From assembly GCF_001194135.2 (NCBI RefSeq), contig NC_068984.1:24926999-24990998 (forward strand): DNA of 64,000 nt. Direction: 5' to 3'. The position numbers and the translations under genes are program-made. A model generated the notes under the pieces. That model was not told the DNA's origin, did no database searches, and saw only the letters and a list, made by a program, of their open reading frames with translations. This DNA comes from Octopus bimaculoides (taxonomy: Eukaryota). Below, one piece after another: positions 36,516 through 63,770 of the stretch (positions within the stretch are counted from its first letter, which is position 1; every line of letters begins with the position of its first letter).

Positions 36516-37121
36516 TCATCAGTTTAATGCCTACTTTTCTATGCTTGCATGGATCACTTGGAATTTGTTCAAGATTTTCTACAGCTGGATGCACTTCCTG
36601 TTTCCAATTCCCACACATTTATTTCTCACTAAGATAATATTTACCCATGCTGAGCCATGTACTTCACAGAAGACTAGAAATGCACAACATCACTTGTATG
36701 ACTGACTATCACTTACAACCGCTACGGGATGTCAAGACACTGGTGCACAATCACACACATTCTTTCATCTGTTTAACATCAGTTGTTCCATGGCTTGGAC
36801 AGCAATTATTTTGAGGAAGGATTTATAGGCTGGGTACTCTTCTAAACACTAATATCCACTTGTTTTTTAAAGGATTTTTATCAGAGGGAAAGCTGGGTTT
36901 TTTTTTCTTTCAAGCCTTCATTGATCTATTTTTATTCCTCTTGTGGATGGAGTTTAAGTGGTAGCAATGTAGGTAGTGTAGAATTGTGATATGTAAGAAT
37001 AATCTTTAGCGATTATAATGGTTAGATGTCATGGAAATAGTCAATAAATTTAAATTAACAAATAACAGCTAATTAAAATTAAGTTAAGCCTTTTCAATAG
37101 ATGTATGTATAGAAGGCATAC

Positions 37122-37152
<31 letters not shown>

Positions 37153-39469: not shown

Positions 39470-39526
<57 letters not shown>

Positions 39527-40746
39527 CAGACACTCAAACATATATATATATATATATGACAGGCTTCTTTCAGTTTCTGCCTACCAAATCCACTCACAAG
39601 GCTTTGGTCAGCCCGAGGCTATAGTAGAAAACACTTGCCTGAGGTGTCACACAGTGGGACTGAACCCAGAACCATGTGGTTGGTAAGCAAGCTACTTTCC
39701 ACACAGCCACTCTGTGCCTATATATATATATATATATAAAATGTTTCTTTGTATTTGTTTTTATAAATTTGTATATATATAATGTTTCTTTGTATTAATT
39801 TTTATATATGTGGTGTAGTCAAAAAGTATCTAAGCTTGATTGTTTTTGCACAAAATAATAATGCTTGAGCAAAAACTGTGTGGGTATTAGGTGGCTGCAT
39901 CCTTCCTGAGCATGCACAAAAACTTTCATTGTGCCAGTCACCCACAATGATGCGTTATGTATAGACATGAAAAGTATGCTGTGCGATTTTTGTTTTAGTC
40001 AAGATGACTGAGCACATTGAGCAAAGATACTGTATCAAATTCTGCCAAAAACTTGGTGATATGCAAGCCCAGACTATCAAGAAGATTCAGAAGACTTTTG
40101 GAGATGATGCTATGTGAAAAACACAAATAAAGCAGTGGTACAACCAGTTCAAAGTTGGCCACACCTCAGTGGACAGTGAGCCATGAATGGGCACCACAAG
40201 GTCAGATAATTAACAAAGAATATTACCTCAGGGTTCTTCATTGCCTTCATGAAGCTATGCAGCAAAAGCAACCTGACCTGTGGGCAGCAAAAAACTGGCA
40301 ACTCCACCATGACAAAGCACCCACTCATTCTGCCCACATTGCCCAAGCATTCCTCATCAAGCAAAATACATCACTTGTTCATCAGGCTTCCTTCTCCCCA
40401 GACTTGGTTCCATGCTACTTTTGGCTATTCCCAAAGCTAAAAAGTACTCAAAGGGAGAAGATTTGAGTCAATAGGGGACATTAAGCAAAATTCGATGACA
40501 CAACTCTACAGCATCCTAAAGTGTGATTTCCAAAAATGTTTCCAGCAGTGGCAGAAGTGTGTAGACTCCCAAAGTGAATACTTTGAAGGAGACTAAATCA
40601 AGACGATGAGTTTTTTTCATATTGCTTGTTTTGGGGTCAAAGGTTGGATACTTTTTGACTACACTTCATATTTGTGTGTATATATATATATATATTTCCT
40701 TGTATTTGCTTTTGCATATTTATGTGCATGTATATGTGTGTATGTA

Positions 40747-40804
<58 letters not shown>

Positions 40805-43800
40805 AAGCAATAGACATGCACACATATATGTACACTTATATACACAGAAAGAGACACACATAAACAGATACACAGATAAACAGATACACCCAATTATACA
40901 TATGTACGGATATGCACTATATAGATATTGAGAAGTCCTTTATGAAATAGTAAAAGGAAAAGAAAATCTCCCCTTTAGAGAAAATGGAAACGGTGGTATC
41001 AGTCAACCAAAATGGGTGAAATATAGTTAAATATTTCCAGACGCTTACCTTGGCTGAAAGATCATCCCGAATCTGCATTTAATAAAAGATAAGAAAATTA
41101 AGATAACAATGTGAAGCATCCTACATAATATTCAATTTATAAATTTGAAAGAACAGAGTGCCATGCATTATTCTGCAATAAAGAACATCACACACACAGA
41201 GTTACTTATATGCTTAAAAATCAAAGATAATTTGTCACTAAAGTAGTATGATACTAATTAGATGATATTTATGATACTGGAAAGAGCCTTGTAGGAAAGC
41301 TCTTGCTACCAAGTCATCTCCAACTTTGAAGCAGCCAGGATTGACACTAATAAAAATAATAGACCCCAGTATAGAGTTGGGTCTAATCTGTCCCCAAATG
41401 GTGGAAACCACTACTACAACAGATCTGCAAATCCTAGGTGGGTCTGAATTCCCACACGAGATGACATGCCAATACATCAAAGAACACTGTATAGCTGTGT
41501 CCTGTTGAATCTTCAGTTTGTCAACGTGACAAGTGAGTCCAATAATGAAACTAAGTACAGAACCATCTAAGAATAAGCTGATGACAATTGGTGACTAAAT
41601 TTATTGAAATAAAGTGTTACTGAAAATATTGAAAAATGATTCAATTCTAATGTTGGAATTAACAGTTATAACATTGTGTTAAAATTATGTTCTAATAGGT
41701 TAATTACCTAATTTTCATGTTCATTAAAAGTGAAACAAACATTGTATTATTTTACTGTATCTTAGAACTTTTCTAATCTATAGTCTTGTGTGTGTGTGTT
41801 TTTTTAAACATAAAAATACTTTTAGCTCATTATCAGAAAAACAATTACTTCTGAAGGTGCATGACTTAGTGGTTGTGAGTTCAATTCCCAATGGTACATA
41901 GTGCCCTTGAGCAAAATACTTTATTTCATGTTGCTGCAGTCCACTCAGCTAGCAAAAATGTGTGGTACCTGTAATTTACTTTGTAAGTTAATAGAATTGG
42001 TAGAATGTGATTAACCTTGTCACATTCTGAGTCTTGCTGAATCATCCTGAGATCTACATTAAGGGTACAGATGTCTGTGGAGTGCTCAGCCATTTGCATG
42101 TTAATTTCACAAGCAGACTGTTCCATTCACCAAACCAATCAGAACCCTCATCGTTGTAAATAATGGAGTTCCAGAAGATTACTATTTCTGAACTATTTAT
42201 CATCAAATGTGTACTGTTTTAGATATTCACATTAATTGTAAAGGAGACAAATGAATCATTTAAGCTATGTTTTAGAAGCATGAGTACAGAACAGATTAAC
42301 TATAACAAACATTTAATATAAATACTAAGTAAGTTTCAATTCAATAGAGAAACCAAAAGATTATTATCAAAATAAGATGTTAATAAGAAAGTTTTATAAA
42401 CAACTTATAGGACATCATGGTAACAGATACCTAATGAGTTATGGACTTAACCTAGCTGCAAGTCTCCTACATCATAAGCATCATTATAGTCTGATTTCCT
42501 TATCTTTCTTTTGAGTCCAAAGAACATTTATGAGAGTAAGACATATATATAACATTCTGCTCTCAGTAAGACATACAGAACATCAGATATCTTGGTTCAT
42601 AAGCCTTGTTCAAAGAATGTGTTTGATGTAATATAATTTTTGTAATTTTCAGTTTTAATGATATTGCTCCATTCCACATATCTGGCAGTTATTACAGAAC
42701 AGAAGGTCATGATGAAACATCTCATCACTTTGGACAAAATTGACTACATAAGAAATATCAGAAAAGAAGCATTAAGCCAACTTCTTTTTTTTTATGCAAT
42801 GTGGCATTATGTCTCATGCTAAAGCTAACTTTAACCCATCCCGGATGATAATTGACTGAAGAATATTAGTTATTGCCAATCTGTCAGTAAAAGAAAACAC
42901 AGTTACCATGTTACCAAGTCTTGTCAATGAGCTAGATTTCATCTCACCCTTTGTTCGCCTTACACCAGTGTTTCAGTGTAAAATATTTTTGGAATTGTCA
43001 TGATACAAGCTACTAGCTACTAGTAGTAGTTCTAATATTCTCTATGAACTATGCCTAACAACCAGCACTTATTTTTCAGGTGCCTTTTGCAGAGACCACT
43101 TTGTGCAAGCATTCAGAACAATTCTCTATACACCTATATTTTTGTAGCATATGTTCAACCTGAACATTAACTATATCAACCATACCGCTCTGGGAGAAAT
43201 CTGCAGAGATCTTGAGTTCTTCTCCTCATTCTCTGTTCAAATTGTAAAAGAAAAAAAGAAAAGAAAAGAAAATGCTCAAACATTCAAGACCAAATAAAAA
43301 TGGTTTATATAAGCTTGTACTTTCTATAGAATGAAGTTCCAGTGAAAGCCTAAAATATTAACTTTAGTTGTTAGATCTCAACCCCCTCTATTAATAGTTG
43401 TTAGTGAGAAATATGTTACAATCTCTGAAAAATAACTTTCAGATTAAACAAAACTGAAAATAAACAGAAATATAACCAATATAGACTTGATAACAACAAT
43501 ATTGTAAAAATTCATTAAATTATTGATAACAAATTCAAAATAAAATGAATATTTTAGATTGGAAAACATTTCTTTATAAATCTAAAATGTAAAACATACT
43601 TTCCTATGTCTACTACCAGCCTGAAATCAATAAACAGAAAAAAAAGAAAGAAAAAAACTACATAAAATATGGAAAGTATGGTATATACATACATTTATGG
43701 AACCTGTGAGAAATTATATTATATATAAATGCACACACACAGAAATTACACAATTGTATGATAGAGCAATATGATAAAAAATGAAAGGGCAACAGACTAC

Positions 43801-46800
43801 AAAGATAGTAAAAAAATGTTTAAATGATCCTCAATGAGAAATAAAAGATTAGTATCGGATCTGTTTTAAAGAAGAGAATTATATAAAATTCATTTGTAAT
43901 TTCTCCACTCTGAAAATTCTAAAGATATTCTGAGATAGTCAGATAAGTTCCCAGATTTTATTCCCAGTTGTAGTTCACTCACTTCATTTACATTATCAAT
44001 GTTTTAAGAATAGTTGAGTTCTACAATCTCTATTTCTTGCTTTCTTGAAAATCCTAAAGGAGGTGCCTGTCACCCAAAGAAATCAAGTGAGAAACATTTA
44101 GTTCCCCATCAGTAGGGGAACTAAATGGCAAGCTACATTACATCTAAAAGTGAACATGATTAAAAATAATATTCAACTCATTCATTTAATGTTACTCCTA
44201 ATTCCTCTGTGTTGTGACAAGAGAAGGAAGAAGTCTACATACACTAAGTGATTGCTAAATCATTATTCACTGATTTCTCACATAAATACTTATTCAAAGG
44301 CATATCTAAAACTGAAGGGAAATAAGATTGTATGGTGTTTCCAAGAGTAATTGAAATAATGAGCAAAGTGAACTAATTGCTCAGAACTGAAACTAGTTTA
44401 TATTCTTGGCTTATTGAAAGCTTACCTCTAGCCTGTAATATTTAACAAACCAGTTAAAATATATTTAAAATTCTCAAATTCCATTAGTAAAATTTTAAAA
44501 AATAACTAACCCTAACCACTCTCTACATTCATTAAACTTAAAACAAGCATGCAGCAGTTTCCATAAGCACAAGCTAATGTGGTCAATATTGGTTTCTTAG
44601 TAACAAAGTCAGTTTTAATAATATAATCAGTAATATTACAAACAACATATATAACTGGAATTTATCTTGCTAGCCCTGCAAAATAAAGGGAAAATAAGCA
44701 AGATTTCATCCCAGAATATAAGTGGATAAAATTAAATACTGTGAAGATTTTCTACAGTTTCTGCAAAATATACTGCAAACTTCAATAATGGAAAAATGAA
44801 AATGCAGTTATCATCGGCAGAATTAGTTGATATGAACTGCTTTGCAGCATTTAGTTTTCTCCAGCTCCATTCTGAATATGAATTGTGCTATTAAATTTTT
44901 CTTCCATCCTTCAAAGGTAAAAAAAAAAAAAAAAAAAAAGGATCCACACAATGCCCTGGAATGAACTGAGTCAACTATATTACTTTCCTACAAACATTGA
45001 CTCCATTCTTAAGAAACCAATATTATAATAATTGTGGCATTATTTAAATTCTTTTCTTGAAAAGCAAAATAAAAAAAAAAACATATATAAAACATGTTTA
45101 ACATCAAGTGATGGCAAAATTTTGAAACAGTAATTTCTGGCACGATTCACACTAAACAGTTTTCATAAATTTTCTTTCTCTTGTAATGACATTATTTTAA
45201 CTGGTTTCAACTAGTTGGCATGGCCGTGCTGGCACATCACATGCTGCATTAACTTTTGAAAAGAAACTTTGATTACTGAAGTCAACAAACAAGGAGTAAA
45301 TAAGAAACATCAAGTTAATTATCTAGGTTACCTCTTTGAAAGCTTCCATAACTACTGGCGTAAGTTTCTGACCACCAGTCAGAGTACGATTGGCATTAAT
45401 ACGGTACCATCCTCTGCCATGGCTCTGACGTTCAGCAAGGGTTGCTGCAGCTAAACGACCAGCGTCTGAATCAGTAATATCTCGTGTACGAGCAAGGTCC
45501 TATAAAAATTCAACAAATAGATAAAACTATACAATCAGTGGAAATAGTTGTTTGAACATGAATGAGTTAAGAAATGGGATTAAACATCAAATTTATCCAA
45601 ATTATGCAAATGTAACAATTGGTTTGAGAATGAGCTGTAATTATGTTACATCTTTCACATTCTTCAATACTAAACCCCACTCAGTTTAGGGCTCTTGTTT
45701 TGTGAGTACTTGGTAACCTCACTAGTGCTGGTGCCACATTTAAAGCACACAATACACTTTGTAAAATGACTGGCATTAGGAAGGGTATCTAGCTATAGAA
45801 ACCATGCCAGAGCAGGTACTGGAGATCAGTGTAGCCTTGTTGGTTTCTATTGGACTATCCATCCTACATCAACATGGTAAAAGGAGCATCAAATGATGCA
45901 AAAAGAAGAAATGCTATTGGTTGAAAGTATAAAATATCAAGAGAGTATGAGATATCAGCAAGCTTTTTACTTCCTTTTTCTTTAACTCTTTTGATACCAA
46001 CCAATCTGCCCAGGGATGCTTCTGGTTCTTTGACATAAAACTGCCTGTTTCAGAATGTTCATATTTAGATTTTAAAATTTCAGTGATTAATTTTATAAAA
46101 AATTCTTTTCTTAAGTAATATTCTTGAAACCAATTCAATGTAGAAGTAAGTGTAAAAGATATTTTACTAAATGCACTAAATTCTTGATTTTGTTTTCAAA
46201 ACTAATTCAAAAGCAAAATTTTAAACTTCTATTTTAGAATATACTGCTTTTCTATTATATTTTATTTTGTCTGATCTCATACATATTAACATTTTTATAC
46301 ATTATTATAAGTGGGATGGTCCTTATAAATTTTACTATGGCATTTGTCTTTACAACAGTTAGACTACAGAGAAATAGAAACTGTCTAGGTTTGCATTACA
46401 GTAACTGTAACAAAATTTTAACTCAACCATTTATGGGATCGGCATATTAACCTTATGGCAATGTTGCTTAGAAAATATTTTGTTTTAAATTTCATTGCAT
46501 GTTTATTCTTACTAATAACTCTTTTTCTGATAATTTTTTTTTTTTTCAAATTTTAGAATTTGGCTTAAGCCATTCCTCGCTGTATTTCTAACAAAAGTTG
46601 CCATCTATGTGTTCCAATTAAATCTGGAAATAATCAAGAAATTGATGGGATTTAAAAAAAAAAAAGTAACTAGTTCCTTTAATTATTAAGCAAGTTTTTG
46701 AAACAAACTTGTGAAATGTGGGAGATATAAATACCTTTAAAAATGGATAGTTTTATATAAAAAAAAAAAGACAAAGAAGCAATCTCAGAAGGGCTGGTAT

Positions 46801-49800
46801 CAAAAAACATTGTAATTATTTTGGAGTGGCTTAGCAGCTTTATAGCATTAAACTGAAATAATTTTTTCTTCTTTGAATAATTAACAGGCTTAAATACTTA
46901 AATTCAACCATAGATTACTTTACAAAAGAGCCAGGTGTTCACTCTTTGCATTTCAATCACTATTGTTTCCCAAAATTTGCTAATTGTTTGAGGTACATAT
47001 AGGGTTGCAAGTAGATACAGATACCTTCAAACCCTCCTATCCTTGACCCAGCAGAATGCCTGGGATGGGACAGCTGAAAGGAGGACTGCATCAGCTCTCA
47101 ACTGAGAACTACTTTCCAGTTGAGTGAGTAGGAGTAACATAAAATGAATTGCTTTGCCCAGGGAAGCAATATGCCACCCAGTCCAGGAATGAAACCCATG
47201 ATCTTATGATCATGAGCCTAACACCCTAACCACTAGGCCACTTGCCTTCACATTATCTTTTAAGATCAATGATATGCTAGAGATAGATGATCAACAGTTT
47301 TAAAGGAAAGAGGATGATGAACACCACCACATCTGTGTATAAGTCTAAACTGAAAAGTCAATGACTAAAGTTTACCGTTTATTTAGCTGAATGTTTTGTA
47401 GTTACTCCCTTTTAGTAAGTTCCTTATTTAACAGATCAACAGATGATTAACTGAACTGTGAGAAACTCACTGGTACGTATAAAGAAAGCATACAATGAGG
47501 GAGGTTATTGCAAAAACACGATGATTCATAAATGAAATGAAATTTATAGCACACACACATACGCAGAGTAGCAAGAGACTGACTCAACCAAAATAGAAAT
47601 ATTAATCTCTATTATGGTATCAAGTACTCTTTCTTCCAAGTCATCATTAAATGGATAATATCATCATCAATATTTAACACCTGCTCTCCATGCTGGCATG
47701 GTTTGGACGGTTTGACATGGAATGGTTAGCAGGGAGCTGTCCAAAATCCAATTGTTTGTTGTAGAATGGTTTCTATGGCTGGATGCCTTTCCTAACACCA
47801 ACCACTTAACAGAGTGTGCTGGGGGATTTTTAGGAGCCACTGGTATAGGTGCACTAATGCAGTACCAGCATGGGTGCTTTTTAAGTGGCACCAGCTCCTG
47901 AAAGAACAAGCCTGAATGTATGGAAGACAGCGATTTTACTTAGTTTGATGTGTCTTTTTAAGTAAAGCAAATCACCACATCTCCCAGTTCCTTGTCATTT
48001 TCTCAGTGAGGCCCAGCATCCAAAGATCCTTTCTCATCACTTCATCCCATGTTTCCTGGGTCTACTCATTTTACAGGTACCCTACACAATTAGAGCTTGG
48101 CACTTCTTTATGCGGCTGTCCTCAACCATATGCATAACACAACCAAACCAGCACAGTTTTCTCTTTCTCACATATGATACAGAGTCCACACACACACACA
48201 TGCATACACAAATGTAAGTAAAAAGTTCTCAATGCATACAATTAATGATAACAACGATTAAAACTGAGGTTTTGCCCCTTTGTTACTGAGTTTCATGTTA
48301 TCATTTTGTAGAAAAGCAGTAACATGAAGCTTGAAGTATTAAGGTTTGTTATTGTATATAATTTTATTATACTAAAACAGACAATAGAGGAAAGAATTTG
48401 GAAGAAACCTACTCTGGCAAGTAAAAACACATTTTCTTCAGTGGATTCGGGTTTGTCCAAAGGTTCTTCTTCTGAGGCCTTTGTTCCTAAAATAAAAATA
48501 ATTTGAAAATAAATGTTTTTGTTGTTAACTTTCTGTTATGTAAAGGTTTAAAATTGGCAATTTATTAAAAATGACAAGTATTATTTCATTAGGATGATGA
48601 TATTTAAGCTTGTCTGACAGTCTTATTTACTTTGTAGCAAAGACTGAATCCAATGTGACATATTAGTTTGCTAAAATATATTCCTGCCATTAGCAGACAT
48701 ATGAAGATATTCGAAGGAAAAAATTTTATTCTTGTGGTATAATCTAAAACAAACAAGATTACACATAGCAATAATAATATTAAAAAAGTAACGTTTCATA
48801 TAAGCAAGTTTCACATTTCATTGGAGTTCTTAAATATAAAAGTTAGGGAAGAATTTCTACCTTTTGCCATCTTTTACTTTTAAAAATAAATTATTTGACT
48901 ACACTGTGTTGAAACTTAACACATTAGAACCTTGCTATTATAAGCAACAACAAAAGCCTTTTAAAAACATCAGCAGCAACACAAGTTTAAAAGACAATAC
49001 ATTACAATATTAATAAACAATTTCATTTACACTTCATTTCTCAGTAAACTAATTAGTTACAGTTACATGCTTGGTGTGATAGTTTATTGGTTCTGATTAT
49101 CAAATGAACTGAAAAAAAATGTTTCAAGTGACAAACACAAATATTAAAAAACAAAAACCATAAATCAATGATACTTTCTAACATTTAACATCCATCAAAC
49201 CTAAAAAAATGTATTAAATCTTCAAAAATTCAGTTGTAAATGTATATTATCTACTGCTTAAAAGGAATAGAGAAACAGTTGAAAATGTAATTTATTTGTT
49301 TAAGGAACTGAAAAATTATATCTGTTTATTGAACAGAGATTCAACCTATAACGAAATATAAATAGCAACAAATTTTTTTGTCTGACCTTAAACATTTAGT
49401 CAAAAAGTGTTGCCACTAAACTGAAGTATTTATTTTAAAATATATTGACCAATGACAGGTTTATAATTACTAACATCTCATCACTTTTAATTCTAATGTA
49501 ACCTTTAATTAATCTTGTAAATTTATAATTATCTTCACATAAGGCCTCTATTGGTTAGAGTTGCCCATCTAATCTACACAGGGATAATTTCTCTCCTGGA
49601 CACAAGCATTTACTCATATAGTAAGTCTTCTTTCCCCCATTCTCTTGACATCATTCAAGGGCTGATATGACTCATTACTAGTGTCATTGCAGCTGAACTC
49701 AAAATATAAAAGAGCCAGGACAGACAGTGCAAAATATTTTGCTCATTGCTCTAATAATTCTATCGTCCCACCACCCTAGGCAGAGACTAAATTATATCAA

Positions 49801-52284: not shown

Positions 52285-55200
52285 ACTCTAGATATTTAAC
52301 AATATAAATGAAAAAATCTTAGACACAAATATTGGTAAAAACGTTAAGAGATAAATCATATCACAATGAGAAGCTTAACTTAATTTTCTGGTGTAATACC
52401 AAAATATCTGGTGCTATCTAGACTTCCATTATATCATACACCTAAACCTTTTTCTATCAAGAAAGTCTATAAGTGCAATGACCCTTACTTATTCTTTAGT
52501 AGATTACAATAATTGAAAGGTACAACATAAAATTTTATATAATGAAATGTAATTTTATAAAATATAATTGCTTCTTTGAGGTTCATAAGAGCTAGTTATT
52601 GAACCTGAACAAATGTAAATGTATTTTTTTTAATCTTATTTTTACTGTAGTATAAAACAGGAACAGTAGAAAGCCAATATTCAACATTCTTATAAATGTT
52701 TCTCTCACCCACACAAACATATTAATTACACACTATTAATTACATAATATCAAGTGTGACTGTGTGCAAGAAGTTTGAGTTGAAGATAATTTCTTCCTTT
52801 TTTTTTTTTTTTTTCTCACTCTCTCACACAAACAAATATTTAAAGCAGTTAAGCACAATTGGAAAAAGCATGCAAGCTGGACATGATGGAAGTTTTTTTA
52901 AAGCTTTGTGTAACAAATGATATTAGTAGTTATAAAATTTTTTTTAAAAATATTCTGGAAAGAAAACACCTTTGTATAGACTAGCTAAAACTTGGTGTTC
53001 ATCTATAATGGTTAGAAGCAAAATGCTTACCTTTGCCAAGCTGTTTATCTGAAGCAACAGAATTTATAGAGAAAAAAAACAAAAGAAACAGAAATGTTAA
53101 GAGAGAAACAGTACATAGAGAAAGAGTAACAGTTTAGTAAGGTTGACTGTAGTAGGTAAACAAGCAACTTTCTTCTTGATACATTTCAATATTGATCCAT
53201 TCAGTATCTACAATGCTAATTTTGGTGAAGTTAAACCCTTTGCCTTTCCAAACCATTTCCATAAATTTGTCCTAAACAGCCATGCTTCTTTTCAGACTTC
53301 TAGTTATCCTTTGTTTTATATGTTCTTAGTAATACATAAATCCCAAGTTACTCTAGCGGTTGAAAGAAATTAGGAATTCATATCATATATAATGCATGGT
53401 TGCCAGGAAAATATGCCCTGTGTATCATATGTGATACAACAGACAGGCAAAATGTTAAGAAGAAAATTCAGGTAAAAGCTGTTAAGAACAATTGAGAATG
53501 AGCATCGACAATAGATTTATGGGGGATGATTTTAGTTAGAGTTATATGGACATATCCAGAGGTTTCAAAGAATAATTTCAAATATGTCATCTAAACTAAG
53601 AGAAAGAAAGTCTTGAGAATTTGTTAAAAAGTCAGAAAGATCAATTTATAAAGATATATCAAAAGGTGATAAGAACTGTTACAAATAGTGAGTTAAATTG
53701 AAAGAGTATTAACTGCTAGCAGAAGTTTAGAAAAAAAAAAAAACCTAAAATAAAAAATAAAAAGTTTAACTAAATATATATAACAAAGCTAAGGGAATGT
53801 ACTGCAGTTAGATAAATGATGAAACAATACAAGAACAATTTTGAAAAATCCTTAAGGTAAAGATAATACTGTTCTTCGTGATAGAAATTTTAAGAATTAA
53901 GTGGTTGCCTTACTACCGTTCTCATCAAAAATATTGTATTTTAAATAGTTTGATTTGAATACTCTAGATATGAGCATGAGAGATCAAGTTAGAAAACAAA
54001 CCACTTGTTCCAAGACAGATTTAGAAAAGAAAACTTAAGGTAGAAGAAAAAATGGAGAAATATTTAGGAAACTGAAATCCAATTTAACATGGAATATAAA
54101 AAATAAATTTTGGATATCTGACAGGAAAATTGAACCCTTTTAGATGTTCCATGTTCTTCTATTACATTTCAGCTCTCATATGAAAGAAAGGTTAGTAATA
54201 TAGAGATATGTAAAGAAAAATCTAGTGAAAGGTTTTGAGAAGAGAGTTAATGGAGTCCACATTGTCAAATAGCTAGAGAGAAAGTGAATGAAAAGAAATT
54301 ATTTCACTACAAATGAAAACAAAATAATTGAAAGAAGAAGCAATTTAGAGAGACAGTAAACAGTGATAAATTGTGAGAAAAGCTTCAGTAATGAAGAGAT
54401 AGCTTTACAAGTGTTTGAGCAAAATAAAAAAGAAATATATATATATATATAAATAGCTGGAAAATGCAGATAGAACTGTAAGATAGAGAAATCTGCTATT
54501 AAGCAAAGCTTCATTCACTTTTAAAATCTCACATGTGTCTCTCAAGAAGAAAACATCTTCAGGTACTTATAACTTTCAGAAAGTTTAAACCATCAAAATT
54601 AGAAATATACCATAATTATTTTCATGCTTTCAATGCTGAATGATGGCACTTCAAAGTTTTGATGATTTCACTAAACAGTTATGAAATTCATAAGTTTTTC
54701 TTTCTTTTTCTTTTTCGTTTCATTGGCACTCAATAATACATTAAAAGCAAGTGAATTATTAAAAATATAGTCCACTGTGGTCCTTTTTTTCAACACAATC
54801 CACTAAAGTGCCACCTCGAGTAAAGCAAACAAAAGAAAGTGCCTTGTTACTATAAGATACAACACAATGACCAATATGTTGACTATTTATTTAGCATTTA
54901 TGCCTTATTCCTAATAATTAGACAAAACTACATCCAATACCAAATATAAGCTTCTTCAACAAAGAAAATTGGCCTTTTCAAATTTGTTCATAAGCTGAAA
55001 AAAAACAAACTTTAAGTGGAATATCAAGTAATTGTGCTTAGACTGGAATGGCTTTTGATAATCTAATTTTTTTTCAGGCAGTATATATAGAAGTATAGTA
55101 TTCAATCTGTCCTTTTAAGTAATGATATTTGAGTGAAGTTTGACTGCTATTTCTAGCAGGCACAGTCAATGTGTAGAGGTTCCCTTGGCTTATAGCTAAT

Positions 55201-56227
55201 GAATTTAGAAACTTCATTAACATTATATCTTAAACTTTGAAACATTTGCTTTTGTAAAATGTGTATTTAAACTATCTCTATTCATTCTTTAGTGTCAAAA
55301 TAAATAAAATTTATTCAGTACATTCAAATTGGCATTAGAAAGGGCTTCTAGCAATAGAAACCATGTCAAAAACATGTGAGACATACTCCACTGCCCATGT
55401 TGAGGAAGAGTAACTCAATAAGAACTGATTCAGGCAATGATAACTGGAAAGCAAGTGTAAAATACTGATGAGAGGTCACATTTGAATGCACCATTTGGAT
55501 TGCAGGAAACCAAGACAATACATACTCTGTAGGTCTGCTTTAAAGGATATACTTTATATTAGTAAAAGAGTGTTTAAAGACCTTATTTTTCATAGTAATG
55601 CATAACACTAAAGCAGGTTTGTAATCTCTCAAATTTTATACATTTTGGAAAGATACATCTATGCTGTAAATGACATCTTGTCTGAAAACAAATTCTCTCT
55701 TTCCTACCTCTACTGTAATAGTTCAATATCAGATTGATCTTTAAAGCAGGAAACTGATATTTTTTTACTACTCAGATACAAAGTTATTTAACCTTTTCAG
55801 TATCATATTACGATTGGAATATATTGTGTGTATCCATAAATTCTAATATTTAAAAATTGGGAAATAATTAGTAAAATAATGATTCAATGATAATTAAGCT
55901 GGTGTCTGAAATTCAACAAACTATTCTTACATAAAGTGACAATGGGAGATTTAAGTCTAAATACAAACACTTTAAAATGAAAGATTTTGTTTCTTAGAAC
56001 CAGAGATGGTTTCAGTTAGATTAACTTCAAGAACCAGATTTTAGATAATATTTACTGTCACAATTAGTTACAATGTTTACAGGCATGGCTGTGTGGTAAG
56101 GGGTTTGTTTTCAAACCACAGGGTATCATGTTCAGTTCCTCTGCATGGCACCTTGGGCAAGTGGATTTTACAATAGCCCTGAGTTGACTAAAGCCTTGCG
56201 AGTGCTAGATGGAGACTGAAAGAAGCC

Positions 56228-56267
<40 letters not shown>

Positions 56268-56317
56268 ATATATATATATACACACACACATACACACACT
56301 CTTGACATGTATGTATG

Positions 56318-56350
<33 letters not shown>

Positions 56351-59300
56351 GTGGGTCTTTGTGTGTCCCCCTACCCCTTGATAATTGGTGTTGGTTGTTT
56401 ACATCCCTGTAACTTAGTGGTTCAGCAAAAGAGACCAATAGAATTTAGTACCAAACTTTAAAATAAGTACTGGAGTCAATTTGTTTAACTAAACCCTTCA
56501 AAGTGGTGCCCCAGCATGGCGACAGTCTAATGATTGAAACAAGTAAAAGATAAAAGATAGATATTAACTTTAATAATGAGATTATAGTTAAAATATTATC
56601 TAAATAACATCTATAAATTTTCTGATCAATGAAACCACTTATTTTGAAAAATTGGAGTAAGAATAAAGTTGAAGTTAAAAAAGAAAGTACTGTTTGCAGA
56701 TATGCATCAACAACATGCAGAAGTTAACCATTTCAAAAGACCAAAATGAAAATACAATAACAGATACATTTTTAACAAACCTTTCAAAGTCATGCTTTGT
56801 TACAGATCAGCACATCAGGAATTAATAAACCATTTAGACATGCATTTAACCATTCCTCATGCCATACAACCAAAGCATATTTCACTCAAGTTTTGTTTTG
56901 CTAACAAATCCTAGTTCCTTTATCAATTGGAGTTATTTTTATGGCACCAGTTTCCTTAAAATGTTTGATTCCACCTCTATAACATCCTTACTATTTTTTT
57001 TTATATATTTAAAAGTACTTTTAATTTTAATAGTGGAGAATCACAATAAAATTTAATGATATCTTAACCAACAAAGAAAATATCAGAAAAAATTAAACTA
57101 AGAAAAACATTGAGAGCAAATGATATTCACACCAACCTAAATAAATACAAACCAAGTAGACTATTGTCTATTCACTAAAAATTATAACATGATCATCTAA
57201 ACCGTTATCCCTCTACACTCATTTCTTAAACACACGGCTCAGTAACTGTACAAGTGTTTACATACAGATAATTGAGAAATGATGTATTTGAGAGAAACAT
57301 TAAATCATATGCTCACAAAGTCTCACAAACTATTCACAGGAGCTGGCTACAGACAAAAATTGAGCAACCTTCTCTAACTGCCTGGTCAACAAATGTTTTA
57401 GTAATTTGATGACAGAAACTGGAAGGAAATCAGAAGTGAAACAATAATGAAAGAAATTAAATAAAAATCAAAACTAAAATGTTACACAAAGGCAAAAATC
57501 TAAGCAAAAGAAGTGAGAGATCTGATAGGATTTTCTTATTTTTAAGCCTGGTTTCATAATACCAACTGAACAACAAAATTGTGATAAAACTTCAAATATT
57601 CCTAAAATTGTAGATGTTTCAACTTAATCTATTCAACTATTATTTGTCACGAGTTCCTCAATAGCAATTAAATCTTGTCTACTTTAACGTCACACCACAA
57701 ACCTTTGTAGCTATGGAAATAGTGTTCCAAACATTTTCATAAAGTAACCTTGAAATTATTTTATTAAATAAATGCAAAATATTTGAATAACAGTCAACTA
57801 TGGTTATAAATAACATAAAAAATAATTAACAAGTAGACACATTATAGAACTAATGTGAAAGACCATTTTGAAAATATACATCATTGTAACTGCCTTTACC
57901 TTGTTATATACAAACTAAAGACAATAAAAAAAAAATAGTAATGTAATCTTCAATATCTTTGCAAAAAAGGATTCTAAACAAAACACAAATGTTCTAGATA
58001 ATCTCAACATGAAATTTCAGTGAAAAATTAAAATATAAACCATACTGTTTACAGGCATATTTCTGCCATTTCTTAATTATCAACAGAGAGAACTTTCTTT
58101 GAATGGTGTTGACACTATTAACAAATCTTAGATTATCACACATCTCATAAACAAATAGAAAACCCTTCAGTTTAACCACTCAAAATGTTATTTTCTAACA
58201 GGCTCCATTTTCTGTACTTTTGAATGACATCATTCTTAGATTATTAAAGAAAACAAGAGCTGCACAAAACAAAAAAAAAAAAAAGAAAATCATCACCATT
58301 AAAAATCATCTATTTGGAAAAATAAATTACAAAACTTATTTGATACTATAATTTAATGTCCTAAACGATGCTAAAGATAAAAGATACAATTTTAAATTCC
58401 TTTTCATATCTGTGTTATAATGAAGAAAGTTTCCCTGGTCCTAAAGAAACATATCTACATTATAATAATTATTATTATTATTTACCTTTTGGTGCATCAA
58501 CTGAAATAACAACATTAATCTTTAAAACAGATATAAAAAATCTCATTCCTGTTAGGAGTCGTAGGTGGGGAACATTTCCTTGGAAGAAGAAAAAAGTGAC
58601 ACAGCAAACAAGTGAAGAAATAAAAACAAAATATACACAAGTCTCCTAACGATATTTTTGCTGTCAGAAATTTCTCTAGAAAACCGTTACATTCAGGAGT
58701 TTTACTTAAAAGTTTAATTTAAAACAAATATAAATTTCAAAATGCATATCAAAACATTATAGAAGGAAAAAGAAAGTAGCTACTAAAATTTCATAAGCTT
58801 AGGAAAACAAAAATATGAATATATTTATCATTAATTTATTACACAGGTACAAGTGTACCTAAATATAATAGAGTAAAGAAATGTAATGGTATAAAGATAA
58901 TGCCTTTTATGAAAGTAATACTAGCATAACTGAAGTCAAATGACCTGCTAGAAATCAAAGACAGGTTATAGGCAGGTTTCACTATGAACTTATCTATCCT
59001 TTATGCCATTTGCTGTTAGAAATCCTTCTGAAAACTTTGTCAATTAGCAGAATATGTAAAGCATTGGGCAAAATGCCTTACAATATTTATTTGCTTTTTC
59101 TGGGGTCAACTTTGCCTTTTATCCTTTTGGGTTGATAAAATAAGTACCATTTGAACACTGGTGTTGGTTTAATAGACTTAGCCCCTCCCACAAACCTGCT
59201 ACTTTGTGCCAAAATTTGAAACCAATATCTATTTGCCTCACTTTACATTCAGTATTTAAATCCTGCCAAAGTCAACTGTGTCCTTCCCCACCTGAGATTG

Positions 59301-62300
59301 CTAAGTACTGGATAAATAAGCACCAGAGTCAACTGGATACCTGGTCCCCACCCCAACAACTATGTGGTATTGTGTTTATGTTAGAAAATTATTTGAAATC
59401 TTAAATGCAAATATATAATTAGGGAAATCTTTCAAAGTGTCATCGAAATTATAAACTACTGCATATGCTTTTATTACAAATGTATTTATATTGAATTGGT
59501 CAACCAGAATAGTAACAAAAATGTCTTACTCTTGCTGATTCTGAGATTATCTATGATTGGCTTAGCCTTCACTCAAAAATGGATATGACTTGATAGAAAA
59601 TATAGACCTCTCCTCTTTGCCCTCCAACTCTTAACCCAGTAGAACATTGAGGTTATGATAACTAAGGAGAGAGCTGCACTAGTAATCAACTGATACTCAT
59701 TTTCAGCTGAGCAATGAAATACCTTACACAAGAATACAACACTCCGCTCAGTCTAGGAACTGAACTCACAACTTTATGATCATGAAGCCAACACAATTAT
59801 CACAAGCCACTTACCTTTACTTGCCTATGATTTGTACTTTGATTTACTACAACTTCTGAATTTAATGGATTCATCCCTTGAATTCATTAAAAGAGGTAAG
59901 TTGGCAGAGTTGTTATGAGGGAGGATGATTTATAGGTAAAAAATTAGAATGTTGACTGTACAAACGTTTGTGAAAGAAATAATAAAGTTTAAGTTTATCC
60001 CCTTTAAGAGTTAATTGCCTCTGACAAGACATCATAATTCTGGAGAAAAACTTTGAAACATTGGCCCTCAACTAACAGTGATAATAGTTTTTTTTTCCTA
60101 GCTATGCATAATCCTCTCTATAAAAAAGTGCATAAAGAAAAATATCCATAGAAATCTCCTATTAGAGTTGAATTTCATAGACTATACACCTATAAGATAT
60201 GATTTTTAGCAGTAACACAAGGTCATAGATTTTTAAGAGAGGGTACAGTTGATACAAATTGTTAATTATCTTGGAAGGAACTGAACTCACAACCAACAGT
60301 GTACTGCAAGCTGTGAGTGTCCAGGGCAAGGCAAGCACTGCAAGGAGGGCATACTATTTTTGTTATTATTACTTCATATATATATATTTTAGTTCTGTTA
60401 ATTTTGTGCTCTTAAGAATGTTTTCCTCAAGACAACCACCCCTATGGCCTCACCCATGCTATGCAACAGTTCAGAATATAAAAGGATGTAACTAAATACC
60501 ACTAAACATTTAGTCAAACTGCTTGACTGTTTCTTTCACTACATTTCCTTTCCAACTAGAAATAAGTCATTTGAATAAGAAAATAAACTCAAATGAATTC
60601 ACATTTATGATAACTAAACCAGAAGGAAGTGTTTTAATAATAGTAAAAAAATTTTGAATAATTAAAAGACATCCGTTTCAGTTGCTTTTAGCTTTCTAAA
60701 TGAAATTTCTGACATAAGAACACAGCTTACCTTTTGCTTCTGGTGCTGTTGTAGTTGAACATAGAAAAAGACATTAGCTTTAGTCTTATTATCAGACATA
60801 GCATAAATAAAACAAGAGGGAGGAGCAGAGCATACAAAAATTACCTGTCTGTATACAATAAAGTAAAACTATTTTTATTTATTATTATTTTATAATAATT
60901 ATTGATTTTATACTATTATTATTATTATTTTGCACATTTCATTGATGAGTTTGCATTAGGATAATGAATAATCTTAAAATTATGACTTTAAAGGATAATA
61001 TGACAGGAAGATAAAGTTGGTGATGATTTGATGAGTAGAAAATGTTGCAGGTATAATTAGCAGTGAATAGTGTGACTGTATTTGTAAGAGTCAGCCAAGT
61101 TTGATAAAACTTTTTTTGACTAGAATTCCTTAGTGCATTTGGGAAGGAAAAAAAGAGTCAGTGGGTTGTGCAATTCACAAGAGCAATTTTTATTCTCCTG
61201 ATGGCCATCTTGCACAAGATTCATTTGCTGAAAATTCTCTTCGTTGTTGTATAGTAAAAGAAGATAAAAAAGAACACATTGCATGATGTGATTCTGGAAA
61301 GGCACATCATGCCTTAAGAAAAGAAAAAAAAAATAGGAGGTTCATGGCAGGAATGTCAGTCAAAAAAATGAAAAATCAACACAGAAATCCTCCTAATTAG
61401 TAACAGTGGGGTTTTCCTCCAAGTATTTACCAGTAGAGTAGCTGCACAGCTTGCTGTGAAACACTTGATGATTTCCAGATAATAGATTTTAGTGACAGCA
61501 ACAGTGGTGTACATGTGTAGTCAGCTGGTGTTGTAAAGTGGGATTGTGTTGATAAGAGGAGATGAGATTAGATGATCAGATGAGCTTTGGGTGTGTAATA
61601 GTGTGACATCTGTATAGAGACTGGATTTGGAAGTGTTCAAGAATGTTTGGGGAATCTATGAGTCAGAAACATCACAAGGGGTAAAAGATTAAGCCCAAGT
61701 AATTCAGCATGGTAACTATTTCAGCTTCAACAGCATCTGGTACCCAAAGCATCACTTTATAAATACACTCATTTCTCTGGTAGGCAGCTGGTGTCATTTA
61801 GATTATTTTAAATTTAGTTGTAAATAAATGCAAATATAAAAATCAGCTATTTATTTATATTTTGTTTCACATTGCTACTGTACTTATCTTTAAAGCATTA
61901 AACTGCCATCAATTAGCTATCGAAGATTTTAACTATGTAGGTGTTTTTGGTATGTTATACAAATGAGACAGAAAACAGAAGTTCACATTGAATGTTCCTA
62001 CTATTACCACACAATTATATATAAGAAATATATATATTACCACACAATTATATATAAAAAAGAATTTCTTTAAAAAATACGAAGTAGATTGTTTATTGAA
62101 GTATAACAAAACCAGAGTGGAGGAATATTGATACACTGTTACATTTTGACACTAGTAGTTTAATACAGTGCAAACCAGCTCTGAAATCATAAGATATGAT
62201 ATAAGCATTTGTCAGTGAATGTTTAAAATGAAAAAGAGTTGTTTTTGTTTCTTATTTTTTGTCATAAGTGAATATTTAGATTAAAAATATCAAGATGGCG

Positions 62301-63770
62301 AGATGGTGTGAGGGCGGTTGCAATGGCATTGAGGTAGATCTGGCCACTCCTGTTAATGGGGACAAAACCCGGATTTAAAACACTGGATGATGATGAACAA
62401 AGACAATCAAATATGATAAATTAAATATAAAAATATCCTTAAAAAAATCTATTAAATTTCACTTGCTGTAAGATAAAATGTAATACATTGGAAATATTTG
62501 AAACTTCTATAAATATTATCAGTCTGAAAAAAAAAAAATGGGAAAACAGAAAAATATTAATGCTGATGACTGGGCACAAGGTCAATTTAGATAGATAAGG
62601 AAGGCAGTGTAGTTAACCGAATTAACCCTAATATATTACTGATACATATTTTATGTGCACAAAGTAATAATAGCACCCAATAGGTAAAACCAAATTATAT
62701 TCACTAAAACAGCCAGTTTATTATTTTACTGTTTTAGCTACCCTCATCAACCTATTTTAAATATTGATTTCTTATGGAAAGGGCCACAAATTCTTATGTA
62801 CTTGATAGTTATGTCTTTCTCAAAGATATTAAGAACAAGGCTAAAAAGAAATTCTTTTAAAAGGGAGTCGAAGCCACGATTAACTGTATTCTACATTGAG
62901 CAGCTTAATTTAAGCAAGTAATGGGCTAATTTAGATGCTTTAACCCTTTAGCATTCAGATTACTCTGTTAAATGAAATGCTTATTTATCCAGTCTTGAAT
63001 TAGTTGCGCATCATCTCATATTTTGGAATTTCAATGATGTGACCCTTTATTTTTCTGATATTGTGGATAAGGTGTGAGAGGCTAGACCTGGCTGATTTTA
63101 ATATATACAAAATATTTGAGTCAGATATGATCAGTTTAAATACTAAAGGGCTTAAAGTTTCTAATTTAGAACCTTCAAGAATATCAGATTATATCAGTGA
63201 ATATTTTAGTTTGTCATTCCATTAGAACCGATATTGATTTAAATTACTATGCCTGATTCCATTCAAGATGTATTGACTTTGTGCCTCATTTAAGAAAATA
63301 ATACACATGCACACACATACACTCATATTAAATAAAATCTTACCCATTGCTATTTCGTAGATTCCTGTGGATTTATCCTCCATACAGCACTTCCGGTCAA
63401 CCAAATAGGCAATAAGGATGAGAAGTGGGAAAAAGAGGAAAGTCACAACGGCTTCCCACAGTTCCACTACATTCGGACTACTGACTAGTAAAACAATGGC
63501 AAGCCACATGTAAGAAAAGAGGCAAAAGAATGAGGTGATACCAAACACACGCATACTTTTGATGCGTCGGAATTCACCTGCTGGAATTGTCATGATACAG
63601 ATACCAGATATGACGAATAAATTGAAAGCAGCTGAACCAACAATGGTTGATGGTCCAAGAGCACCAGCACAGAAGCCGTTACCCAGAATCTCAATAACAG
63701 ACAGTAGGATTTCTGGAGCACTTGTACCAAGAGCCAACAGACTGAGGTTGGCAACAGTGTCATTCCATAC
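7624..63770 (-). CDS. SLC8A: Na+/Ca2+ exchanger (SLC8/NCX family), spliced gene span, 5'-partial
   Basis: Ten GT-AG core exons with matching phases total 2187 nt (728 aa plus stop). They contain alpha-1 ([14 protein letters not shown]), two Calx-beta domains and alpha-2 ([22 protein letters not shown]). The specific paralog is not assignable by eye. Confidence 0.97.
8359..8527 (-). mobile_element. RTE family 1 tail, diverged
   Basis: Reverse copy of the same 3' UTR core. Confidence 0.7.
8931..9311 (-). mobile_element. RTE family 1 3' end with ORF2 remnant
   Basis: Contains LGLTEAMTK-like coding sequence and the 3' UTR. Confidence 0.75.
10411..10740 (-). CDS. SLC8A: NCX core exon I: alpha-2 repeat
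   Basis: gatttttcag|GCTTTG...ACAAAG|gtaaga, encoding ALFACVPPP...[13 protein letters not shown]...[15 protein letters not shown]. 330 nt, phase 0-0. Confidence 0.97.
11664..11842 (-). CDS. SLC8A: NCX core exon H
   Basis: atctttacag|AATTC...TGGAAG|gtaaga, encoding [10 protein letters not shown]...[10 protein letters not shown]...[12 protein letters not shown]. 179 nt, phase 1 to 0. Confidence 0.95.
12060..12890 (+). mobile_element. Tandem cluster of tRNA-headed SINE family B
   Basis: Repeated gagctggcagaatcgttagc...gagttcaaattc...ttcatcctttcggggtc..taagtaccag units at ~12163-12397 and ~12406-12625, with partial copies either side. Also at ~22260-22460, 22880-23165(-), 34295-34680 and 59030-59230. 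Confidence 0.8.
13200..13305 (-). CDS. SLC8A: NCX core exon G (CBD2, second part)
   Basis: ctattttcag|ACAGCC...GAAG|gtaagc, encoding [35 protein letters not shown]. 106 nt, phase 0 to 1. Confidence 0.93.
13569..14350 (-). mobile_element. SINE family A copy split by a Penelope-like insertion
   Basis: 3' half at 13569-13775 and head at 14180-14350. The ~330 nt between them contain a hammerhead motif. Confidence 0.75.
13824..13872 (+). ncRNA. Minimal type I hammerhead ribozyme motif (U4C core variant)
   Basis: GTCT-CCGATGA-AGGGA(12-nt loop)TCCCT-GAAA-C-agct-GTA-AGAC. Stems I and II pair perfectly and stem III is palindromic (ACAGCTGT). Confidence 0.7.
14429..14722 (-). mobile_element. RTE family 1 tail, young
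   Basis: Near-identical in reverse to 26010-26276 (about 5 mismatches in the last ~190 nt, by eye). Confidence 0.9.
14914..15146 (-). CDS. SLC8A: NCX core exon F (CBD2, first part)
   Basis: catttcag|AACCTGG...ACTAAG|gtaaat, encoding [18 protein letters not shown]...RSNGADG...GELTFENGE...IYDTK. 233 nt, phase 1 to 0. Confidence 0.95.
16071..16532. mobile_element. Foldback element: tRNA-like centre, (AAT)n, Penelope-like ends with hammerhead motifs
   Basis: Arms ~16071-16255 and ~16272-16471 are reverse complements. Each arm carries gacac-CTGAT(G/A)A...(G/A)AAAC-gtgt. Confidence 0.8.
16640..17098 (+). mobile_element. Old RTE family 1 3' end
   Basis: GRGRPRK...[12 protein letters not shown] remnant followed by the shared tail. 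Confidence 0.7.
17874..18106 (-). CDS. SLC8A: NCX core exon E (CBD1)
   Basis: ctatttag|AGTTGAA...GACG|gtaggt, encoding [14 protein letters not shown]...[13 protein letters not shown]...VTIINDD. 233 nt, phase 2 to 1. Confidence 0.95.
18940..19311 (+). mobile_element. RTE LINE ORF2 fragment (linker before the RT domain)
   Basis: [10 protein letters not shown]...[10 protein letters not shown]...[17 protein letters not shown]...[19 protein letters not shown]. Confidence 0.85.
19338..19945 (-). mobile_element. RTE family 1 3' end with expanded internal tandem units
   Basis: Shared tail plus several ~55-nt gcacc/ggcact units. Confidence 0.8.
20678..20871 (-). CDS. SLC8A: NCX core exon D (start of CBD1)
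   Basis: tgtttttgacag|CTGCAT...GTAAG|gtaagt, encoding [13 protein letters not shown]...[34 protein letters not shown]. 194 nt, phase 0 to 2. Confidence 0.93.
24209..24428. mobile_element. piggyBac-like MITE
   Basis: TTAA|ccctttag ... ctaaaggg|TTAA. Second copy at 62944-63150. Confidence 0.75.
25787..26276 (+). mobile_element. 5'-truncated young RTE LINE (family 1)
   Basis: Intact ORF2 end [35 protein letters not shown], duplicated UTR units and a (GAT)n tail. Confidence 0.92.
26766..26780 (-). CDS. SLC8A: NCX candidate microexon m5 (15 nt, L-D-N-P-Q)
   Basis: atttcctttttgcataacag|TTGGATAATCCACAG|gtaagc. TGC at -10, phase 0-0, no stop. Confidence 0.72.
27062..27264. mobile_element. TTAA-flanked MITE, second family
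   Basis: TTAA|cccatttgttactatatttctgttg. An inverted copy lies at 28082-28291 and a related one at ~45987-46140. Confidence 0.65.
28082..28291. mobile_element. TTAA-flanked MITE, inverted relative to 27062-27264
   Basis: Ends caacagaaatatagtaacaaaaggg|TTAA. Confidence 0.65.
30203..31005. mobile_element. Head-to-head pair of family A SINEs
   Basis: Minus copy ~30203-30590 and plus copy ~30645-31005, separated by (TA)n. Confidence 0.8.
31150..31400 (+). mobile_element. RTE family 1 tail, diverged
   Basis: agaagactcatcaagccaag... through the gatgaggatgat tail. Confidence 0.7.
32741..32952 (-). mobile_element. RTE family 1 tail nested in a family A SINE
   Basis: SINE sequence runs ~32685-32740 and resumes ~32955-33230. 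Confidence 0.8.
37950..38840. repeat. (TA)n-derived minisatellite spanning an assembly gap
   Basis: ~24-nt cttatataaatatatatatatata units. N-run at 38084-38589. Other gaps at 9351-9728, 14107-14178 and 35896-36052 also abut microsatellites. Confidence 0.9.
39807..40670 (+). mobile_element. Internally deleted mariner (Tc1/mariner) transposon
   Basis: TIRs gtgtagtcaaaaagtatc / gatactttttgactacac in TA context. N-terminal [21 protein letters not shown] is fused to the C-terminal LHHDKAPTH...[17 protein letters not shown]...[12 protein letters not shown]. Confidence 0.9.
41049..41072 (-). CDS. SLC8A: NCX candidate microexon m4 (24 nt, I-R-D-D-L-S-A-K)
   Basis: ttttcttatcttttattaaatgcag|ATTCGGGATGATCTTTCAGCCAAG|gtaagc. 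Phase 0-0, no stop. Confidence 0.7.
41860..42170 (+). mobile_element. Diverged tRNA-headed SINE (further family)
   Basis: B-box-like gagttcaattccc and gcccttgagcaa. The 3' part is shared with ~6330-6440. Confidence 0.55.
45332..45499 (-). CDS. SLC8A: NCX core exon C (helical region before CBD1)
   Basis: ttttatag|GAC...GAG|gtaacc, encoding [56 protein letters not shown], homologous to the NCX motif SRAFYRIQATR. 168 nt, phase 0-0. Confidence 0.92.
47660..48140 (-). mobile_element. Old RTE family 1 3' end with ORF2 remnant
   Basis: [39 protein letters not shown] followed by the tail. Confidence 0.8.
48413..48486 (-). CDS. SLC8A: NCX core exon B (loop N-terminus)
   Basis: ttttattttag|GAACAAAG...GCCAGA|gtaggt, encoding (G)[24 protein letters not shown]. 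74 nt, which supplies the required phase 1 to 0 change between exons A and C. Confidence 0.85.
53031..53048 (-). CDS. SLC8A: NCX candidate microexon m3 (18 nt, D-K-Q-L-G-K)
   Basis: tttttttctctataaattctgttgcttcag|ATAAACAGCTTGGCAAAG|gtaagc. Long pyrimidine tract, TGC at -8, phase 1-1, no stop. Confidence 0.75.
56080..56555 (+). mobile_element. Full-length family A SINE
   Basis: Head, central microsatellite and aaacaagtaaaagataaaaga tail. Confidence 0.8.
58486..58500 (-). CDS. SLC8A: NCX candidate microexon m2 (15 nt, V-D-A-P-K)
   Basis: atgttgttatttcag|TTGATGCACCAAAAG|gtaaat. Phase 1-1, no stop. Confidence 0.6.
60731..60745 (-). CDS. SLC8A: NCX candidate microexon m1 (15 nt, A-P-E-A-K; a 9-nt variant E-A-K is possible from an internal AG)
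   Basis: ctttttctatgttcaactacaacag|CACCAGAAGCAAAAG|gtaagc. Phase 1-1, no stop. Confidence 0.65.
62944..63150. mobile_element. piggyBac-like MITE (same family as 24209-24428)
   Basis: TTAA|ccctttagcattcagatt ... ctaaaggg. Confidence 0.75.
63344..63770 (-). CDS. SLC8A: NCX core exon A: alpha-1 repeat, TM2-TM5
   Basis: tttcatttag|GTA TGG AAT GAC..., [23 protein letters not shown]...[18 protein letters not shown], ends G|gtaaga. 427 nt, phase 0 to 1. Confidence 0.96.

Follow-up and report, generated by a model that had tools for sequence, protein, structure and literature searches.

Splice variation in Na+/Ca2+ exchangers (NCX) is a familiar means of diversifying the large cytosolic loop of these proteins, and all of the variation that has been studied alters CBD2, in vertebrates, Drosophila and squid alike (PMC2217150, PMC2217142, PMC10550945). 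The small exons A–F of vertebrate NCX1 (SLC8A1) are used combinatorially, and Drosophila CALX1.1 and CALX1.2 are distinguished by an alternatively spliced difference of five residues, which shifts recovery from Na+-dependent inactivation approximately threefold (PMC2217142). Supplement file 4 of PMC8797185 also lists, for Drosophila Calx, two exons with a common upstream donor: a microexon of 15 nt (chr3R:21008722-21008736) and an alternative exon of 39 nt. Squid NCX-SQ1 has a conserved XIP, and no splice variants were found among nine clones (PMC2217150). The minus strand of a 64,000-nt stretch of the Octopus bimaculoides genome (NC_068984.1, positions 24,926,999 to 24,990,998; the whole stretch is referred to as the window) carries most of an SLC8-type Na+/Ca2+ exchanger gene, a paralog distinct from NCX-SQ1, that contains two clusters of cassette microexons. 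The first cluster, m1–m3, consists of real, ordinary, conserved and alternatively spliced cassette microexons that are already annotated. Similar to NCX1 exons A–F, these are small exons of the large cytosolic loop that are used in combinations. However, unlike the NCX1 and CALX exons, which lie in CBD2, the octopus cassettes lie upstream of CBD1 and are not homologous to them.

An earlier note on this DNA had drawn attention to m1–m3 and knew of no description of the tuning that it proposed for them. RefSeq XP_ isoforms of three Octopus species already contain the cassettes, so that their existence is not new. No paper that describes them was found: a full-text literature search returned no description of cephalopod NCX microexons or of NCX splicing next to XIP, and a bilaterian splicing survey that included an O. 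bimaculoides transcriptome does not mention the gene. The present analysis adds proof that the cassettes are strongly conserved, the placement of the cassettes relative to XIP, and the second cassette cluster.

Gene model and cassette microexons

The gene was recognized from the listing of open reading frames (ORFs) and by tblastn, and a protein search gives its RefSeq name as 'sodium/calcium exchanger 3', with isoform X4 matching the window exons. Pfam matches to PF01699 and PF03160 place it in SLC8, with two Na_Ca_ex membrane repeats flanking two Calx-beta domains, and a phmmer search against solved structures scores 511 bits with the human NCX1 structures 8sgi and 8jp0. The exon table, with minus-strand coordinates, was derived from the longest O. 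bimaculoides isoform and then refined at split codons. The window does not extend to the first coding exon. From residue 97 onward, the window exons, spliced in appropriate combinations, give exact matches to seven O. bimaculoides RefSeq isoforms, and each of the 15 introns in the spliced model is bounded by GT-AG.

Exon A (63344..63770) encodes transmembrane segments TM2–TM5 and the XIP-equivalent segment, and ends in phase 1 (...GCA ATG G|gtaag at 63344). The 14,857-nt intron that follows, referred to as site 1, extends to the start of exon B at 48486 (48413..48486, an acidic linker) and contains three phase 1 microexons: m1 (60731..60745, 15 nt, (A)PEAK), m2 (58486..58500, 15 nt, (V)DAPK) and m3 (53031..53048, 18 nt, (D)KQLGK). 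Reading the sequence on the minus strand confirms the coordinates and peptides given in the earlier note; with their flanks, the segments are cag|CACCAGAAGCAAAAG|gtaagc (m1), cag|TTGATGCACCAAAAG|gtaaat (m2) and cag|ATAAACAGCTTGGCAAAG|gtaagc (m3). Each one supplies two bases that complete the split codon and ends with a single G. Because every site 1 exon ends in G in phase 1, each cassette is a self-contained module (A-PEAK, V-DAPK, D-KQLGK). Each preserves the frame and has no stop, as had been claimed, and every combination of cassettes translates without a stop. The CAG acceptors and AG|GTAA donors that had been noted are present, with the pyrimidine tract of m2 being weak. The suggestion that m1 and m2 arose by duplication does not hold: their flanks are no more alike than expected by chance (z = 0.31), and the same is true of the CACCA and CAAAAG that the two exons have in common.

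A second cluster resides further downstream. Seven remaining introns of the gene are indeed 0.9–2.9 kb, as previously stated, but the count omitted an eighth, the 24.5 kb intron between exons C and D (45331..20872; site 2), which houses three more cassettes just before CBD1. Exon C (45332..45499) encodes DLARTRD...EAFKE, a helical region before CBD1, and exon D (20678..20871) encodes the start of CBD1. Between them are the phase 0 microexons m4 (43600..43620, 21 nt, AGSRHRK), which is found only in Octopus, m5 (41049..41072, 24 nt, IRDDLSAK) and m6 (26766..26780, 15 nt, LDNPQ). The lengths of all six microexons are multiples of three. Microexons are confined to the two long introns of the gene.

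The splice-site pattern exceeds chance by far. A strict pattern that requires a CAG acceptor preceded by at least 60% pyrimidines, an AG|GTAA donor and a length of 6–30 nt has six matches on the minus strand of the entire window, four of which are the annotated microexons m1, m3, m5 and m6, and none on the plus strand; m2 is missed by this filter because of its weaker pyrimidine tract. Within the A-to-B intron, two in-frame strict matches are observed, compared to 0.10 in dinucleotide shuffles. An origin of the cassettes in errors of gene prediction, or in AG...GT pairs that occur by chance, is extremely unlikely. The octopus evidence does consist of annotated protein models, which would suit such an explanation, but the shuffles predict only 0.1 such matches per intron, models of three Octopus species share these cassettes, Argonauta conserves them, and the decapod inserts described below occur within contiguous RNA-seq contigs.

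Cluster look-ups for isoform usage covered ten models of O. bimaculoides, eight of O. sinensis and four of O. vulgaris (the RefSeq records with these cassettes include O. bimaculoides XP_052822922/XP_014786862-70 and O. sinensis XP_036358402-6 and XP_029634584-8, together with O. vulgaris models). Both inclusion and skipping are present in the isoform models of these three species. Six of the eight possible site 1 combinations are represented (none, m1, m3, m1+m3, m1+m2 and m1+m2+m3), adding 0, 5, 6, 10, 11 or 16 residues, and this bears out the claim that genuine cassette microexons are used combinatorially. At site 2, after ...EAFKE, there are four combinations, including none and AGSRHRK+IRDDLSAK+LDNPQ. 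O. sinensis isoforms carry APEAK+VDAPK+DKQLGK together, with m2 included in isoforms X1, X3, X4 and X7; VDAPK is absent from the O. bimaculoides models examined, although it is intact in the window, and m4 is annotated in O. bimaculoides models only. Among RNA-seq data, the ortholog is encoded by two decapodiform contigs, assembled by Logan from SRR21372859 and SRR24189493, in which ETQKPQ (18 nt) or DEHLA (15 nt) is contiguous at the site 1 junction. A search for short junction peptides among partial octopus RNA-seq ORFs gave no match, and look-ups of the non-longest isoforms P0123 and P0124 yielded no locus.

Conservation in octopods and other molluscs

Alignment of the orthologous introns of other cephalopods, which the earlier note had named as a check, identifies m1–m3 as conserved islands with their splice sites in Argonauta hians. 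The O. sinensis introns (L002) are ~90% identical to the window overall and therefore have low resolving power; against this ~90% background, the microexons with 50 nt of upstream sequence are 98–100% identical, and m2 is 100% identical. The Argonauta A-to-B intron (L005) is 15.0 kb, and its comparison with the octopus intron yields only four high-scoring segment pairs (HSPs) at E < 1e-4, covering 2.5% of the octopus intron. Three of the four are centred on m1, m2 and m3, and the remaining one lies a short distance downstream of m2. The Argonauta exons keep AG/GT, length and frame, and read APEAK, VEAPK and DTQLGQ; the APEAK peptide is identical in O. bimaculoides, O. sinensis, O. vulgaris and Argonauta.

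The same comparison applies to site 2. In Argonauta, m5 is a conserved island that reads LQDHLSMK, and m6 is a conserved island that reads LDNPQ and includes 42 nt at 100% identity. As at site 1, the AG/GT sites of these cassettes are kept in both O. sinensis and Argonauta. No match to m4 is found in the Argonauta C-to-D intron; in O. sinensis (L002 ~27104-27124) its splice sites are kept and it reads AGSRYRE, with two residues changed. Over 15–24 kb of Octopus–Argonauta intron, conservation is essentially limited to islands at m1–m3, m5 and m6, and m4 looks like a young, Octopus-specific cassette. As read from these alignments, what is conserved is the presence of the cassettes, their length class and their modular phase 1 design, and for m1 and m2 also the peptide.

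These patterns bear on whether the cassettes are merely tolerated splicing noise, included at low level in a disordered loop without functional consequence. Such an explanation would fit the disorder of the loop in the AlphaFold2 model, the tolerated deletion of the NCX1 loop (PMC10550945), and the lineage-specific m4 with its changed residues. It is nonetheless very unlikely, given that five of the cassettes stand out as the islands just described with frame and splice sites kept, and that six of six preserve frame.

Similar arrangements are present outside the octopods. A third decapod, represented by the genome fragment L001, has exactly one strict candidate within the 10 kb beyond exon A, an 18-nt exon at 11925-11942, 1.6 kb past exon A, that encodes ESQKPQ and resembles the ETQKPQ transcript of another species. 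Orthology of octopod m3 with the 18-nt decapod microexon was considered on the similarity of the peptides (DTQLGQ and ETQKPQ), but the alignments of nucleotides and of flanks do not agree with one another (z = 0.7 to 3.8). A further m2-like decapod sequence (L001 16820-16834, TTGACTTACCAAAAA after ATTTCAG) has no GT donor and an E value of 0.17; it was set aside as a possible relic or a chance match.

Among other molluscs, Patella isoforms differ by an 18-residue insert at the site 1 junction, Haliotis isoforms by a 12-residue insert there and a 4-residue ADRK insert at site 2, and Babylonia isoforms have either of two alternative inserts, or none, at the site 1 junction. The end of exon A is itself kept, as exon-level ORFs of several mollusc species stop at the same phase 1 boundary. 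Because mollusc isoforms differ at this junction and share the phase 1 exon boundary, it appears to be a long-standing site of alternative splicing at which the cassette sequences are lineage-specific. A broader proposal holds that a hot spot of alternative splicing has persisted throughout Mollusca (octopods, decapods, and gastropods including Patella) at the junction after the XIP-like strand, and that lineage-specific mini-cassettes at this junction, together with the cluster before CBD1, set Na+-dependent inactivation and lipid sensitivity of this NCX paralog in a tissue-specific manner. This proposal is doubtful; if true, it would define a regulatory axis at the exit of the beta-hub that has not been described for any NCX.

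The inserts of other molluscs at the site 1 junction (P0132-P0142, P0153, P0160, P0161) often contain a basic-Tyr motif, such as NKYTV, SNKRYIH, RYTKK, GRKYQ or KKKYT. This motif faintly recalls the XIP core KYVYKRY, and the octopus cassettes do not have it.

Placement relative to XIP and possible effects on gating

The XIP region of NCX is a 20-residue amphipathic stretch of basic and aromatic character that immediately follows TM5. In NCX1, residues 219–248 form strands beta3 and beta4 of the beta-hub, and a 'long disordered loop' joins XIP to CBD1 (PMC10550945). The exon model confirms that the octopus cassettes enter the juxtamembrane loop directly after TM5, as claimed. They do not sit where XIP itself would be, as the earlier note had it; instead, the junction comes after the XIP-equivalent 17-mer. 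In the phmmer alignment, which is weak here, octopus DRKCC aligns with the NCX1 XIP start DRRLL, and the exon A/m1 junction falls ~17 residues further on, at approximately M239/I240 of mature NCX1. The expectation of a basic XIP in this paralog also fails, as the 17-mer is neither basic nor aromatic and has a net charge of ~0. The Pfam Na_Ca_ex_C profile gives 16.7 bits against a cutoff of 25, with the match beginning only at profile position 47. Many invertebrate NCXs have DK(D/N)FC..KK...(E/V)(L/I)G(F/I) at the equivalent segment. The locus is thus similar to the XIP/beta-hub region of NCX1 in that the cassettes enter the chain directly after the XIP-aligned segment, and differs from it in that this segment has no basic or aromatic character, the cassettes lie outside it, and the AlphaFold2 model has no hairpin.

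The cassettes occupy residues 239–254 (site 1) and ~336–355 (site 2), and CBD1 starts near residue 370. Site 2 lies in the counterpart of the region removed in the NCX1 341–365 deletion, where the 8sgi chain reads RLMTGA|TENDPV. In the AlphaFold2 model, based on 115 aligned homologs, residues 224–278 are coil with no secondary structure (predicted local distance difference test scores of 25–48), and a second low-confidence stretch spans site 2; the hairpin between TM1 and TM2 (E75-82, E90-97) is predicted by the same model. On this model, the two clusters would lie at the two ends of a flexible linker from XIP to CBD1, with site 1 immediately following the XIP-like segment.

The earlier note proposed that the cassettes add Lys to a basic, phosphatidylinositol 4,5-bisphosphate (PIP2)-sensing XIP region and thereby tune lipid sensing and inactivation electrostatically. 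The count of one or two Lys per cassette stands, in that Lys is the last residue of each of m1–m3 and DKQLGK contains a second one. If the XIP-like strands form an antiparallel hairpin, beta4 would exit close both to where beta3 starts and to where TM5 ends, a site of PIP2 binding (PMC12119087), and the added Lys could reach anionic lipids. However, each cassette also has Asp or Glu, so that the net charges of m1, m2 and m3 are 0, 0 and +1, and the terminal Lys is the AAA codon of the exonic half of the ...AAAG|GT donor consensus as read in phase 1. Neither is the Lys gain conserved: Argonauta m3 (DTQLGQ) has lost both Lys and has a net charge of -1, and the decapod inserts ETQKPQ, ESQKPQ and DEHLA have one Lys or none, so Lys addition is not the conserved property. 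The XIP-equivalent segment is not basic and scores under the Na_Ca_ex_C cutoff. Finally, of the residues that contact the PIP2 head group in NCX1 (K164, R167, R220 and K225; PMC12119087), R220 and K225 are ~14–19 residues upstream of the aligned junction (M239|I240), and K164 and R167 belong to TM4. The cassettes are less likely to act by supplying basic charge for PIP2, the electrostatic explanation as a whole is improbable, and a role in tuning the inhibitory region is weakly supported.

Alternatively, the cassettes may create or mask a short linear motif, rich in Pro, Ala and Lys, for a partner protein, for trafficking or for Lys modification, such that localization or turnover is changed and not gating. 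Microexons commonly modulate protein-protein interactions (10.64898/2026.09.05.749416), a common role that agrees with this explanation, as does the predicted disorder of the region. APEAK is also invariant in four octopods, and VDAPK/VEAPK nearly so, which fits a recognized peptide better than a spacer. The same-site inserts of decapods and other molluscs are, however, unrelated in sequence, and the linear motif is rated about as improbable as electrostatic tuning.

The reading favoured here, and considered moderately probable, is that m1–m3, which are real cassette microexons, modulate a tether of the inactivation assembly. Cassettes can be included or skipped independently at site 1, and the second cluster, m4–m6, behaves alike just before CBD1. 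Both clusters would lie in the counterpart of the long disordered loop that runs from the XIP beta-strands of human NCX1 to CBD1. The tether that leaves the XIP-like strand would most likely change in length, in stiffness (Pro/Ala-rich) and in local character. Such a change could shift the formation or release of the membrane-proximal beta-hub/CBD2 inactivation assembly, and in turn alter both Na+-dependent inactivation and the way in which Ca2+ relieves it. The five-residue CALX difference, with its effect on recovery from Na+-dependent inactivation (PMC2217142), is a precedent. Use of the cassettes would be expected to differ among tissues, with nerve or muscle as the probable sites.

Several observations weigh against this tether model. 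First, the NCX1 341–365 deletion, near the octopus site 2 equivalent, leaves Na+ and Ca2+ regulation wild-type-like (PMC10550945), so loop length alone may matter little, at least at site 2. Second, the alignment is weak in the XIP-equivalent segment. Third, AlphaFold2 is of low confidence here and does not show an XIP-like beta3/beta4 hairpin, so the geometry of the hairpin exit comes from analogy only. Fourth, sequence conservation is poor for m3 and for the decapod inserts, and the support for octopus splicing consists of annotated isoform models. If the cassettes do change gating, the tether leaving the XIP/beta-hub strand would be a second natural tuning point of Na+/Ca2+ exchange, and the isoforms would provide natural length variants for structural tests of the inactivation-assembly model.

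Intronic elements and other features of the window

Three conserved intronic islands on the minus strand lie outside the microexons. The fourth Octopus–Argonauta HSP of the A-to-B intron (58380..58443) is located ~45–105 nt downstream of m2 and has no open frame; it is a possible splicing regulatory element. A second Octopus–Argonauta island without an open frame lies between m5 and m6 (31772..31900). The third, also non-coding, is 2.9 kb downstream of m6 (23711..23906; Argonauta L005 29538-29722) and contains two conserved GCATG motifs, TTGCATG and AGCATGTATGCACATTT, and for this reason may be a distal Rbfox-type splicing element. At the m6 donor itself (26765..26757, minus strand), the sequence reads GTAAGCATG, with GCAUG at +5, a feature that O. 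sinensis retains and Argonauta lacks.

The cassettes resemble those of the bilaterian neural microexon programme (Srrm234/SRRM4 eMIC domain) in being frame-preserving and 15–24 nt in length, in belonging to a membrane ion-transport protein, and in having conserved flanking intron. UGC close to the 3' splice site is a feature of eMIC-dependent exons (PMC8797185). A UGC is found near the acceptors of m3 (-8), m5 (-5) and m6 (-10), and none at m1, m2 and m4. Within 10 nt of the acceptor, it is therefore present at three of six microexons versus none of ten constitutive exons (Fisher p = 0.036), with a background of 18% at pyrimidine-rich AG sites. The AG exclusion zones of the microexons are not longer than those of constitutive exons (p = 0.54). 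An eMIC-type cis signature was considered and is not established, since the UGC frequency does not stand out clearly from the background and the exclusion zones show no lengthening.

The remainder of the gene, exons E–J (7624..18106, minus strand), encodes CBD1, CBD2 and TM6–10. Its individual exons are E (17874..18106), F (14914..15146), G (13200..13305), H (11664..11842), I (10411..10740) and J (7624..7866, stop included).

The introns also contain mobile-element remains, namely a mariner-type transposase remnant (Pfam Transposase_1, 22 bits, just under the cutoff) and a reverse-transcriptase-like ORF without a Pfam match; ORFs of transposon/reverse-transcriptase type are at 40155..40466 and 18954..19271 on the plus strand. 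A dispersed family of repeats resembling short interspersed nuclear elements occurs at ~14429-14628, 19412-19533, 25837-26273 and 32755-32954. None of these remains or repeats overlaps a microexon. Assembly gaps in the introns appear as runs of N between TA/CA microsatellites, at ~9.3–9.8 kb, 14.1 kb and 35.9–36.1 kb.

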